7,541 bases of DNA from Paramicrosporidium saccamoebae KSL3 (GCA_002794465.1 MTSL01000170.1:14213-21753); one strand, 5' to 3'. Positions 2,975 through 7,346 are shown, numbered from the stretch's first letter. Program-made: numbers and translations. The notes: generated from the sequence alone by a model not told the origin.

Positions 2975-3424
2975 ATGCACCTCCCCACTCTGCTGTCATT
3001 CGTAGGTCTGGTGTATGCAAGTCGATATAGTTTCCAGAAAGTCACACCTCAGGACTATATGGTGGAATCGTTAGTTTCAGGCTGGGCGATGCACATTCAG
3101 TATGTGATCCAGAGTATCTGGCTCAGTCTGCCCAAAGAGTATCGCGAGCGGGTGGGACCACTGACTATAACAGTGGAGGAGCCCAGCGATGAACTGCTAA
3201 CGTCAAAAGCTATCAATCTTACTTTGCTCGAAACCGTCTATGAGAAACAGCGCGAAATGCTACACTCTGGCGAAGATTCTCAGCCTTGCAACATTACACT
3301 CACTTACTACAAGTCGGTTTTGATTGAAAAGACGGCGACGACAAAGGCAGAGTTAAGAGTTGCCCGCCAGCCGGCAATGGGAATTTTGCATAGTATCAAC
3401 GAAATTATCGACTCTCTCAGCTAG
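2975..3424 (+). CDS. Secreted protein family member G1 (149 aa, unknown function)
   Basis: ATG ORF with signal-peptide-like MHLPTLLSFVGLVYAS. Shares family motifs SI..SLP.E....VGPL....EP, YEKQ, YY.S...K, AELRV..Q.A.GI..SI. About 67% identical to G2 (101/150 by hand). Confidence 0.88.
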   Translation: MHLPTLLSFVGLVYASRYSFQKVTPQDYMVESLVSGWAMHIQYVIQSIWLSLPKEYRERVGPLTITVEEPSDELLTSKAINLTLLETVYEKQREMLHSGEDSQPCNITLTYYKSVLIEKTATTKAELRVARQPAMGILHSINEIIDSLS

Positions 3425-3760
3425 TGACCTGTGCGGATATGAAACTTGATATATCGAGCACAGAAATACATTGATTTTATCTGGAGGCAATTGAGATTGT
3501 GGTTTGGCAGTGGTGGACAAGGCTAGCTGGCGACAATACAAAGGGGGGAATGTCAATTGGCCATCTTGGACCCTCAACGCTCTGACAGAGATTAATTGAA
3601 GGATTCAGATCTATAAAAGATAGCTTCGACTCAATAAGATCAGCTACTTTATTCTGTACGTCCGACATGAATTGCGTTTGCTTCAACAACGGAATTGTTC
3701 ATTTATCAAAATCACTCGATCCGAACCCAGTCAATCCTGGCATCCTTTTAAAGTCAAGGC

Positions 3761-3796
3761 GACGGACAGGCCCTTTGTATGACTAAACTGTACTAA
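3761..3796 (+). pseudogene. Relic of the last 11 codons + stop of cox4
   Basis: gac gga cag gcc ctt tgt atg act aaa ctg tac taa (DGQALCMTKLY*) vs cox4 2741-2776 tgc ggg cag gcc ttt cgt att aat aaa ctg cac taa (CGQAFRINKLH*): 28/36 nt identical, no gaps, and homology continues into the 3' flank. Confidence 0.85.
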
Positions 3797-3889
3797 TTAC
3801 GCAGGAGTACCGCATAACTCGGATACCCTTTCATTAGCTGGAAAACTCGTCCAGTGGTCTCCCAGCAATAAAGTCTATTGGACAAACAC

Positions 3890-3987
3890 GGTGGCTTGGG
3901 AGCTAGCCCAACTTGGTAAATCTTCATACTTTATGAAGCTGTAAAAGGGTCCCGGCCCATCTCCCAGTTATTACTTGAACGTAAAAC
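3890..3987 (+). promoter_or_regulatory. 98-nt block immediately upstream of G2, 97/98 identical to 2871-2968
   Basis: Direct comparison of the two copies; function inferred from position only. Confidence 0.55.
3897..3967 (+). other. Degenerate tRNA-like element (copy 2)
   Basis: As copy 1, with A-box-like TAGCCCAACTTGG (3904-3916) and B-box-like GGGTCCCGGCCC (3947-3958). Confidence 0.3.
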
Positions 3988-3993
3988 TCGACC

Positions 3994-4446
3994 ATGCGCC
4001 TTCTCACTCTCCTGTCATTCACAAGTTTGGTGTATGCAAGTGGCCATAGTTTCCAAAACACCACATCTCAGGACTACTTTGTGGAGTCGTTGGTTTCAGA
4101 CTGGGAGATGCGCATCCAGTATGTGATCCTGAGCATCTGGCTCAGTCTGCCCGAAGAGTATCGCGAGAGGGTGGGTCCACTGGATATAACAGTGGAGGAG
4201 CCTAAGGGCGAACCGTTGACGTCAAAAGATGTCGATTTGCCCCTATTCTACGCTGCCTACGAAAAGCAGCGTGCGATACTAAAGCCTCATGTAATCTTTA
4301 CGCCTTGTAACTTTCTTGTATTTTCTTACTACAGGTCGGTTTTGATTGAAAAGACGGCGACGACAAAGGCAGAGTTAAGAGTTGTCCGCCAATCGGCAAT
4401 GGGAATTTTGCAAAGTATTAGCGCAATTGTCAACTCTCTCAGCTAA
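3994..4446 (+). CDS. Secreted protein family member G2 (150 aa, unknown function)
   Basis: Signal-like MRLLTLLSFTSLVYAS; recent paralog of G1 with the frame intact (one in-frame codon indel). Confidence 0.88.
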   Translation: MRLLTLLSFTSLVYASGHSFQNTTSQDYFVESLVSDWEMRIQYVILSIWLSLPEEYRERVGPLDITVEEPKGEPLTSKDVDLPLFYAAYEKQRAILKPHVIFTPCNFLVFSYYRSVLIEKTATTKAELRVVRQSAMGILQSISAIVNSLS

Positions 4447-4659
4447 TGGCCTGTATGGTTATGGAACTTGTCTTTATTTAGAGGCAATTGAGACTGTGGT
4501 TAATCGGAGGATTCGGATCTATGAATGATGGCCTATAATTAATAAGATCAGCGCTCTTTATTCCTGTACACAGGTGATGGCACGAAATGAACTGCGTTTG
4601 CTCTGAAAACAGAAATGTTCATTGCCAAACTGCTCTGTTCGCACCCAATCAATTTTGGC

Positions 4660-4687
4660 CTCGATAAGATGCTAGGATGGCGGAAAG
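4660..4687 (+). pseudogene. Second, shorter relic of the cox4 3' region
   Basis: ctcgataagatgctaggatggcggaaag vs cox4 2722-2749 cccgatgagatgtcaggattgcgggcag: 21/28 identical, no gaps (SIRC*DGGK vs PMRCQDCGQ). It lies exactly where unit periodicity predicts. Confidence 0.55.
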
Positions 4688-4782
4688 ATTGAATCTAATC
4701 CATCGCCCCAATTGGGCAGTCCTTTGGATCAGTCATCAAGGACATTGCGGGCTAAAGCCACCAAATTAATTGCCACTTTTCC

Positions 4783-5382: not shown

Positions 5383-5474
5383 GTGGCTGGCAGATTGATC
5401 TTTCAAACCCGGCCATTTTACTAATAGGATAAGAAAAATTTTAAAGTGGCTGATTCTTGTCACCTCTCTTGAGC

Positions 5475-5927
5475 ATGCTTCTGCCTACACTATTATCGTT
5501 TGCAGGTCTCGTTTGGGCAAGTCGAACAGCAACTCCATCTATGATGCGCGCGGATGCGGCTACATATGCTCCTGGTGGCAGCATGGACCCGCTCGTTATT
5601 GAACAGAAATTGCCACTGCTAAAAGTCGTGGATAGCGTGTTACAGTGCCTCCCAGAAAAAGTGCAAGCGGCCGTGTTTCCATTGATCGTGTCTATTAGAG
5701 ACCCCGCAGGCGAACCATTGGTAACGGGAAAAATCGATTTGGGGCGGTTCAGAGAGGTTCAAACCGATCAGTGTATGGCGTTGTCAGAAGGGCTGGGCGG
5801 CTCGGGCACCTCCTATTATGCCTCTACATTTATCAGCAAGGGCGGTAAAGCAGAGTCGCACTTGATAGTCACCCGTCAGTCTGCTACTGGTATTATTCTT
5901 AGTCTTATTGACATATTTGGAAACTGA
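5475..5927 (+). CDS. Secreted protein family member G4 (150 aa)
   Basis: ATG at 5475 gives MLLPTLLSFAGLVWAS, matching the family start (the track's TTG at 5457 is unlikely). Core VVDSVL..LPE.....VFPL.V....P.GEPL...DQC...SYY.STF..K......L.V..Q.A.GI..SL. Confidence 0.88.
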   Translation: MLLPTLLSFAGLVWASRTATPSMMRADAATYAPGGSMDPLVIEQKLPLLKVVDSVLQCLPEKVQAAVFPLIVSIRDPAGEPLVTGKIDLGRFREVQTDQCMALSEGLGGSGTSYYASTFISKGGKAESHLIVTRQSATGIILSLIDIFGN

Positions 5928-5958
5928 AGCTATTACAGATGATGATGACACGTAGACG

Positions 5959-5964
5959 AATAAA
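5959..5964 (+). terminator. Putative polyadenylation signal AATAAA of G4
   Basis: Starts 32 nt after the stop. Confidence 0.5.
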
Positions 5965-6196
5965 TTGTCTCCATTACTATGACTGCAGAGATGGAAAGCA
6001 TGGTGGCACTTGAGTATCCCAGTTGGCTACATCAAGCGATAAAAGCACTCTAATCCCAGCCGCACCCATAGGGAAATGTCGTGGTTCTGAAGAATTCGCT
6101 TAGTAAAGCTTGCAACAATATCGAGTTTAGCTAATCGGTGATTGCACACTCACTATTGTTATGTGCAGGGGCACTTTGGGAAATTAAAAGTCAGCC

Positions 6197-6676
6197 ATGT
6201 TTCTCCTCGCCCTCCTATCCTTCGCAAGTCTCGCTTGTGCAAGCCATCTGATAGCATTATTTGACACTACGGCGTGTGACACGCAGAATCTAAAAGTTGC
6301 TTCCCTCGTTGCGGGCCAGCGAATTCCCATCACAGAAGCTGTGACTAGCATTTTGGAGATTTTTCCAACAGAAAGGATGGAGAAAATAGGACCGTTGGAG
6401 GTGGTATTCACAAGACCTGTCGGGAAGCCATTGGTGACGGATCATTATGATTTCTTTTTATTTGTGCCGATCTATGAAAAACAGTGCAAGCTTCTGTCTA
6501 TGGAGAACATTACTGGGCATGCAGGAGTCACAGATTTTACTTATTATCCGTATAGTTTTACTGAAAAGACTGACACTACGCAAGCGCAGCTGGTGATCAC
6601 CATCCAACCCGCCATTGGCCTGTTTCATAGTCTCTCCGAGTTCTTGGAGACCCTCATGAGCCAGCAGCTCATCTAG
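6197..6676 (+). CDS. Secreted protein family member G5 (159 aa)
   Basis: Signal-like MFLLALLSFASLACAS; core VASLV...AVTSILEIFP.E....IGPLEVVFTRPVGKPL...YEKQC...TYY..SFTEKT.TTQAQLVITIQPAIGLFHSL. Confidence 0.9.
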   Translation: MFLLALLSFASLACASHLIALFDTTACDTQNLKVASLVAGQRIPITEAVTSILEIFPTERMEKIGPLEVVFTRPVGKPLVTDHYDFFLFVPIYEKQCKLLSMENITGHAGVTDFTYYPYSFTEKTDTTQAQLVITIQPAIGLFHSLSEFLETLMSQQLI

Positions 6677-6681
6677 AGTCT

Positions 6682-6687
6682 AATAAA
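6682..6687 (+). terminator. Putative polyadenylation signal AATAAA of G5
   Basis: Starts 6 nt after the stop. Confidence 0.45.
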
Positions 6688-6863
6688 ACGGCCAAGACTG
6701 AGCGAATAATACAACAGCTATAGTGGATTTATCCTCATAGAACAAAAGCTGCTGCGCGATGCCCTATCCAAATGAGGCAGTTTTATCAAAGAACCATGCA
6801 TCTCCGGCTAGGGTTACGGTTTCAAGGTACATTAAATTATAAGATTTCTTTGTTGCCTCGCTC

Positions 6864-7346
6864 ATGCTTCTCCTCCCACTTTTGTCATTTACAACTCTTG
6901 CCTGTGCATGTCTTTCCAAGTTAATGCAAACTGGGTCTCCAAGTAAGCAAGATGTAATTACGAAGAAGCAAGCAGTAAATGCCCCTCAAGTTTCGGACTC
7001 TCAATCGTCAATCCAGGCCCTCGTGGATAGCGTATTATTATCTAAACCAAAAGAAGTTCAAAAGGAACTGGGCCACATTTCTGTAAAAATGGTCAAGCCC
7101 CGAGGCGAGCCGGTTGCTATTGAAAATTTCAACGACGTCTTCGCTAAGGACGTTTTTGACTTGCAGTGCCAGTCAATGGGTCTGGAGGAGGGGGATTACC
7201 AAGGCCTCCTCATGGACCGCAGCTACTATCCAGTACAATATATTCCCAGATCCGAGTCCACAGAGGCTTGGCTTTTGGTTACTGAGCAATCCAAGATTAG
7301 CCAGTTATACAGTGTCACTGTATTCTTCGAGTCTGGTGCAATTTAG
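6864..7346 (+). CDS. Secreted protein family member G6 (160 aa, most divergent)
   Basis: Signal-like MLLLPLLSFTTLACA; core IQALVDSVLLSKPKEVQKELGHISV....PRGEPV...LQC...SYYP...R.....AWLLVTEQS......SV. Confidence 0.85.
   Translation: MLLLPLLSFTTLACACLSKLMQTGSPSKQDVITKKQAVNAPQVSDSQSSIQALVDSVLLSKPKEVQKELGHISVKMVKPRGEPVAIENFNDVFAKDVFDLQCQSMGLEEGDYQGLLMDRSYYPVQYIPRSESTEAWLLVTEQSKISQLYSVTVFFESGAI

Follow-up and report, generated by a model that had tools for sequence, protein, structure and literature searches.

A tandem family of six predicted small secreted proteins beside COX5B in Paramicrosporidium saccamoebae

What do six short genes, lined up head to tail in the genome of an intracellular parasite and matching nothing in the domain databases, do for that parasite? 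The question is raised by a locus of Paramicrosporidium saccamoebae (Rozellomycota), whose genus sits near the base of the Microsporidia. On contig MTSL01000170.1 (24,192 bp), the stretch from ~14,213 to 21,753, which we analysed as a whole and call the window (7,541 nucleotides), carries six open reading frames (ORFs), G1 to G6, between the genes for COX5B (cytochrome c oxidase subunit Vb) and muskelin. A reading of the bare sequence, hereafter the original prediction, had proposed that they encode an undescribed family of secreted effectors. The array, our analyses show, represents a new family in a category of parasite genes that is well known. The comparisons support a secreted-type, lineage-restricted and fast-diverging family, whereas we advance the effector role as a hypothesis.

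Six paralogous genes

All six genes lie on the same strand (+), lack introns and encode proteins of 149-187 amino acids. Counted from the first nucleotide of the window, they are G1 (2975..3424, 149 amino acids), G2 (3994..4446, 150 amino acids), G3 (4783..5346, 187 amino acids, with a ~40-residue insertion following the signal peptide), G4 (5475..5927, 150 amino acids), G5 (6197..6676, 159 amino acids) and G6 (6864..7346, 160 amino acids). The coordinates and strand first given for the array were reproduced, with a refinement only at the start of G4: its mechanical ORF begins at TTG 5457, and we prefer the family-type ATG at 5475. G1 is documented by its ORF, the family alignment, the profile, an AlphaFold model and a partial orthologue; G2, its closest paralogue (68% amino acid identity), by ORF and alignment; and G5 by ORF, alignment, a full-length orthologue and an AlphaFold model.

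Alignment of the six proteins extends from end to end and contains 16 invariant columns. When each member in turn was left out of the profile it was always recovered, with E-values from 2.5e-20 (G6) to 4.8e-38 for full-length proteins (7e-30 for G1) and, after removal of the N-terminal 16 residues, from 1.9e-15 to 2e-31 at a nominal database size of one million. Outside the N-terminus the paralogues share ~30% identity and their synonymous divergence (dS) is saturated. G6 is the most divergent of them, and because plain BLASTP detects no significant similarity between G1 and G6, the most distant pair, its membership rests on profile-level similarity, which is solid. Profile and alignment thus identify the six ORFs as one real paralogous family. 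The array is also bounded, since a six-frame scan of 16 kb of the contig with the family profile yields exactly six members.

The long core motif described in the original prediction holds in general, with small deviations in G4 and G5. Five of the invariant positions are polar (Ser47, Gln92, Tyr111, Gln132 and Ser140), and the others are hydrophobic core positions and two prolines; once orthologues are included, Gln92, Tyr111, Leu127 and Gln132 are conserved in >=90% of sequences. The family alignment contains no invariant His, Asp, Glu, Cys or Lys. This pattern of core positions, prolines and five polar residues, together with the lack of a catalytic motif, argues for a non-enzymatic scaffold. 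A partly conserved Cys follows the invariant Gln92 in G4, G5, G6 and three environmental copies.

Predicted secretion and fold

Are these proteins likely to leave the cell? All six begin with the motif M-x-L-x-x-L-L-S-F-x-x-L-x-x-A-(S/C), and the heuristic features of this start agree with the signal peptide initially proposed. Residues 1-15/16 include a run of 11-13 uncharged hydrophobic residues, below the length of a membrane span, and, assuming cleavage after residue 15, V or A occupies position -3 and A position -1. The first 16 columns are 65% identical among paralogues, versus 30% for the remainder, the signal-like N-terminus is kept in all orthologues, and in the AlphaFold model of G1 residues 1-25 are unstructured and stand apart from the core. 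Two neighbouring proteins taken as controls, COX5B and lipin, are without these N-terminal features. None of the six proteins has a second hydrophobic segment of transmembrane strength, and none ends in HDEL/KDEL or in a hydrophobic tail of the glycosylphosphatidylinositol (GPI) type. We infer from these features a putative signal cleavage and the secretion of the six proteins.

The predicted mature proteins would be small (14-19 kDa) and acidic (isoelectric point, pI, 4.9-5.8), G1 having a predicted mature form of ~15.3 kDa and pI 5.4. They contain 4.5-5.9% Pro and 4.2-7.6% Lys, with 0-2 N-glycosylation sequons each. Cys residues number 1-3 per protein and 1-2 in the mature part; this count, along with hydrophobicity and inspection of the tails, upholds the earlier description of Cys-poor proteins without a later transmembrane segment or GPI tail.

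AlphaFold predicts with confidence that the family has a conserved alpha/beta fold, as had been guessed from the sequence. Full-length G1, modelled with the six-sequence alignment, reached a predicted local distance difference test score (pLDDT) of 81.5 and a predicted TM score (pTM) of 0.75, with core residues 30-149 >85. Mature G5, for which the alignment comprised twelve sequences, environmental orthologues among them, reached pLDDT 87 and pTM 0.84, all five models lying between 79 and 87. In both models the elements succeed one another as beta-beta-alpha-alpha-beta-(short beta)-alpha-beta-beta-alpha.

Searches for a known domain agreed with the initial failure to recognise one. Pfam hmmscan at E <= 1 gave no family for five of the six members; the match of G5 to Legum_prodom (legumain prodomain), at 13 bits versus a cut-off of 25, was set aside as due to chance. 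A profile search of PDB sequences returned chance matches only (E >= 0.2). The structural comparison recommended together with the original prediction found the fold shared by the G1 and G5 models and no significant counterpart in PDB (Foldseek, best E = 0.15 and 0.28, TM <= 0.46) or, for one model, in BFVD (best E = 0.24); novelty of the fold is meant relative to those two libraries. Foldseek matches to D-amino-acid oxidase, acetate kinase and INTS13 were rejected at TM ~0.2.

Distribution, gene order and rate of divergence

How widely is the family distributed? An exhaustive hidden Markov model (HMM) search, run over 1.84 billion representative proteins, gave seven matches, namely four models of this same locus, two environmental fragments and one spurious hit, and no homologue from other rozellids, microsporidia or fungi. 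Word-index searches agree with this result, the searches together covering 1.84e9 representative and 5.8e9 clustered proteins, and with a widened alignment they gave no further relatives. The spurious hit, a 1634-residue bacterial repeat protein (P0008, E = 1e-5), was dismissed as an artefact of composition or repeats. JGI metagenomes scanned with degenerate peptide patterns provided no confirmed relative, and no further family copies were found among the annotated P. saccamoebae proteins. Outside this genome, relatives occur on three environmental contigs (L001, L003 and L004), the last of them reached via COX5B. The searches thus support restriction of the family to one parasite lineage. The lineage specificity asserted from the sequence is in line with this distribution, as is a source of fungal or microsporidian type with P. 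saccamoebae, a member of the Rozellomycota.

The environmental contigs also preserve the arrangement of the array. L001 (Logan SRR16214429) carries the C-terminal part of a G4-like gene (51% identity to G4), a complete G5-like gene (P0004, 168 amino acids, 61% identity to G5, ratio of non-synonymous to synonymous divergence, dN/dS, 0.22) and, of a G6-like gene, the N-terminal part. On L004, from the same sample, COX5B precedes the first part of a G1-like gene, and on L003 (JGI 3300042204) a G1/G2-like gene, represented by its C-terminal part, precedes a G3-like gene that is 54% identical to G3 and has its characteristic insertion. Since every fragment is closest to the window gene of equal position, the order COX5B-G1/2-G3-G4-G5-G6 is, by this comparison, older than the split of these organisms, and the ancestral array is reconstructed with at least five genes.

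Beyond these close relatives, in organisms with 74-81% identical COX5B the neighbour of COX5B is DUF2462 or another gene, and the contigs recovered from them show no family member. Because DUF2462 follows COX5B in distant relatives, the array appears to have been inserted or born beside COX5B in the Paramicrosporidium lineage; at the rate of this family, orthologues in those organisms could be unrecognisable. The contigs on which the gene after COX5B is DUF2462 rather than a family member are L005-L007 and L009 (COX5B 76-79% identical).

COX5B (2369..2776, +; Pfam PF01215, E = 1e-28), the upstream boundary of the array, served as a yardstick for this rate. Between the window and the organism of SRR16214429, COX5B retains 93% amino acid identity (dN 0.030, dS 0.56, dN/dS 0.05). 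The family orthologues are 38-63% identical, with dN 0.26-0.48, dS 0.58-1.27 and dN/dS 0.22-0.83, so that dN is ~10x that of the neighbouring gene, provided that L001 and L004 derive from the same organism. The non-coding DNA of the two is essentially unalignable. As dN/dS is <1 in every pair, the family is clearly, on these estimates, under purifying selection, and there is no signal of whole-gene positive selection. Of the expanded, fast-diverging family originally envisaged, the tandem arrangement and the speed, ~10x COX5B at non-synonymous sites, therefore stand. Rapid turnover does not: six genes at one locus, with positional orthologues and dN/dS <1, describe a family that, judged by its relatives, is stable and not rapidly expanding.

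G1 and G2 belong to two copies of a duplication unit that are 80% identical over 710 nucleotides (self-BLASTN). Copy 1 (2743..3448, +) comprises the COX5B 3' end, intergenic DNA and G1, and copy 2 (3763..4470, +) a relic of the COX5B tail, upstream DNA and G2. The relic, at 3763-3796, corresponds to the last ~34 nucleotides of the COX5B coding sequence; its presence in the G2 unit shows that the COX5B-G1 junction was the source of the duplicated segment. Identity across the unit forms a mosaic of 60-100%, with 100% at 2889-2938, 60-62% at 3189-3285 (codons ~72-104) and 94% at 3332-3381. The coding regions are 79% identical overall, parts falling to 60%, and dS in sliding windows varies from 0.10 to 1.40, being high as well in the hypervariable middle. 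We read this pattern as an old duplication partly homogenised by gene conversion, which would have left the central stretch diverged. In that stretch, the L003 fragment has six discriminating residues as in G2 and two as in G1, which at most hints at a duplication that predates the species split and of an ancestral array that already had six genes.

Directly upstream of the G1 ATG, a 107-nucleotide block (2868-2974) is 96% identical to the one upstream of G2 (3887-3993), including 50 nucleotides at 100%, and is only weakly conserved in the orthologous locus L004. It may be either a gene-conversion tract or a constrained promoter or 5' untranslated region; Rfam and tRNA scans of the window gave nothing meaningful for it, and a search for a k-mer common to the upstream regions of all genes gave nothing convincing. 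Within the protein, the variable stretch maps to the loop after strand 3, helix 3 and the next loop. Because differences among paralogues, including indels, peak there, it is the natural candidate for a specificity surface.

Other genes flank the array and do not belong to it. Upstream lies the 3' part of a gene for a lipin/Ned1/Smp2 phosphatidate phosphatase (15..1565, +; Pfam LNS2, E = 2e-93), whose public model has 729 amino acids; shortly before its C-terminus (window ~1500-1545) it encodes 14 Glu in a row. The 800-nucleotide unannotated gap between lipin and COX5B contains an ORF of 84 amino acids (1882-2136) which lacks both a Pfam match and conservation in the relative L004 and is therefore probably not a gene. 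Muskelin, the next gene of the contig after G6, lies on the opposite strand.

Possible roles of the family

What, then, might the proteins do? We tentatively favour, as a quite possible answer, secreted non-enzymatic binding proteins that act at the host interface in an effector-like manner. The six small soluble paralogues would enter the secretory pathway of the parasite via their conserved cleavable N-terminal signal, and a probable cut after Ala15 would release an acidic alpha/beta domain of 14-19 kDa without catalytic motif. Export during the growth stage would deliver this domain straight to the parasite-host interface or the nucleoplasm, each paralogue keeping the common scaffold and differing in its hypervariable surface stretch. 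Rozellomycota grow inside their host as naked protoplasts, and P. saccamoebae does so inside the amoeba nucleus (PMC5701793), so a soluble exported protein would pass straight into the host nucleoplasm. On this view the proteins may be host-exposed and have a binding function, and our preference for the host interface derives from the precedent of Nematocida, where proteins found experimentally to be host-exposed are enriched in signal peptides, clade-specificity, paralogous families and fast evolution, and some of them get to the host nucleus (PMC5423893).

Families such as NemLGF1 and NemLGF5 of Nematocida (PMC5423893) are close to the array in several respects. They too belong to an intracellular parasite of the same broad lineage, bear a signal peptide (predicted in our case) and are confined to a narrow clade; they also share local duplication, adjacent genes and a raised evolutionary rate, and some of their members reach the host nucleus, the compartment in which Paramicrosporidium lives. 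By contrast, the NemLGF families have 18-169 members with species-specific expansion, and the array has six genes at one locus, with positional orthologues kept and neither expansion nor loss. The NemLGF and Mic families have no sequence relationship with the array, and no microsporidian protein was recovered.

A second comparison is offered by effector families of filamentous plant pathogens (MAX, RALPH/RNase-like and ToxA-like), which are small, secreted and often in tandem and share a fold at ~25-30% identity. These are mostly Cys-stabilised beta-sandwiches or RNase-like folds with structures in PDB, whereas neither of the two array models matched a PDB chain, and the array proteins have only 1-2 Cys in the mature part.

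Several observations weigh against a host-interface role. In four of the six proteins no basic residue occurs in the n-region of the signal peptide. The family is also small and stable, with a single locus, equal order in relatives, 1:1 positional orthologues and dN/dS <1 in every pair; classical effector families show birth-and-death expansion. A fixed gene number and order fits structural spore proteins about as well as effectors.

The strongest rival is a structural role in the spore. The proteins could be components either of its wall or of the polar filament and invasion apparatus, exported through the endoplasmic reticulum (ER) in sporogony; assembly would then take place beyond the plasma membrane, where the paralogues might join into hetero-oligomers. 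We consider this somewhat unlikely. P. saccamoebae has a polar filament, and HMMs for microsporidian polar filament proteins matched nothing in its proteome, which the authors ascribed to fast evolution (PMC5701793); the genome paper makes no mention of secreted proteins, effectors or signal peptides (PMC5701793). In microsporidia, PTP1 and PTP2 are linked, carry signal peptides and are 17-20% identical between genera (PMC2685015; Delbac 2001 and Polonais 2005 cited therein). The array is similar in its adjacent genes, in its signal peptides (recognised by heuristics) and in a linkage conserved despite extremely fast sequence divergence. Constant copy number and order, 1:1 orthologues and purifying selection are what would be expected of stoichiometric building blocks, and the partly conserved Cys after Gln92 could form intermolecular disulfides. 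Composition, however, speaks against such a role: PTP1 is Pro-rich and acidic and PTP2 Lys-rich, basic and multi-Cys, unlike the Pro and Lys contents and acidic pI of the array proteins. The latter are compact globular alpha/beta domains without repeats or low complexity; they are mutual paralogues, which PTP1 and PTP2 are not, and they have no detectable sequence similarity to these or any other microsporidian protein. The more specific proposal that the array encodes polar-filament or spore invasion-apparatus proteins of Paramicrosporidium, with an unseen alpha/beta fold and unrelated in sequence to the microsporidian PTPs, seems to us rather improbable.

Alternatively, the proteins might serve the secretory pathway or surface of the parasite itself, for instance as lumenal chaperone-like proteins, carriers or nutrient- or ligand-binding proteins, with no part in host manipulation or spore building. 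Purifying selection on each copy would suit such a role, the ancient separation of the paralogues (~30% identity, saturated dS) suggests a long division of labour, and the polar set Gln92, Tyr111 and Gln132 is compatible with a small-ligand site. Yet the proteins have neither an ER-retention signal nor a membrane anchor, their dN is ~10x that of COX5B, and they are undetectable in other rozellids, microsporidia and fungi, which is unusual for housekeeping proteins. On balance we find this explanation unlikely.

A very doubtful alternative is that of a degenerate, catalytically dead zincin-like domain reused as a secreted pseudo-protease, binding or inhibitor module. It is prompted by weak zincin-type structural matches, kept as a lead rather than a finding, that came back with both models and in both libraries: the predicted minimal zincin 3e11_A (E = 0.69, TMq 0.38, TMt 0.46, root-mean-square deviation 6.2), the MMP-11 catalytic domain, an entomopoxvirus matrix metalloproteinase and a phage M34-family peptidase. 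All of them are below significance (E >= 0.59, probability <= 0.38, TM <0.5), for which TM >0.5 or a Foldseek E <1e-3 would be needed, and the family contains no HExxH, no conserved His/Glu pair and no conserved His or Glu in any helix, nor was any peptidase family found by Pfam (E <= 1) or PDB profile search.

The host-interface role and the rivals above all take the six ORFs as six genes, which is not how the public annotation presents them. GenBank PSACC_02683 (286 amino acids) splices COX5B onto G1 and drops the COX5B terminus and stop together with the G1 signal peptide, and PSACC_02685 (296 amino acids) fuses G3 to G4; between them, these models remove the N-termini of G1 and G4 plus the end of the G3 core. 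The public calls for G5 and G6 start at internal Met residues (99 and 140 amino acids), and G2 (P0002) is the sole member modelled correctly. This annotation was produced by MAKER with Augustus trained on Rhizopus, and unsupported predictions were retained (PMC5701793). The COX5B C-terminus that the chimera splices out matches the Pfam COX5B family to position 120/129 and is identical in the relative; because this authentic C-terminus is conserved and the orthologues keep the ATG and N-terminus of each gene, the six-gene reading is correct. That the ORFs are instead exons of larger spliced genes (COX5B+G1, G3+G4), as the joined public models would have it, is hardly credible when each unit has its own ATG and a family N-terminus conserved at the protein level in other organisms, when the fusions delete conserved ends, the COX5B stop among them, and when the models come from a predictor trained on Rhizopus, with unsupported predictions retained.

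Whichever role applies, these gene models need correcting, and the COX5B-G1 chimera corrupts the annotation of a conserved respiratory gene. The locus provides a compact candidate set for a host-interface or polar-filament role, and its environmental orthologues permit evolutionary analysis. Should the proteins prove host-exposed, an intranuclear rozellid would for the first time have candidate effectors; should they belong to the polar filament, they would give a first molecular entry point to the invasion organelle in the lineage giving rise to Microsporidia.

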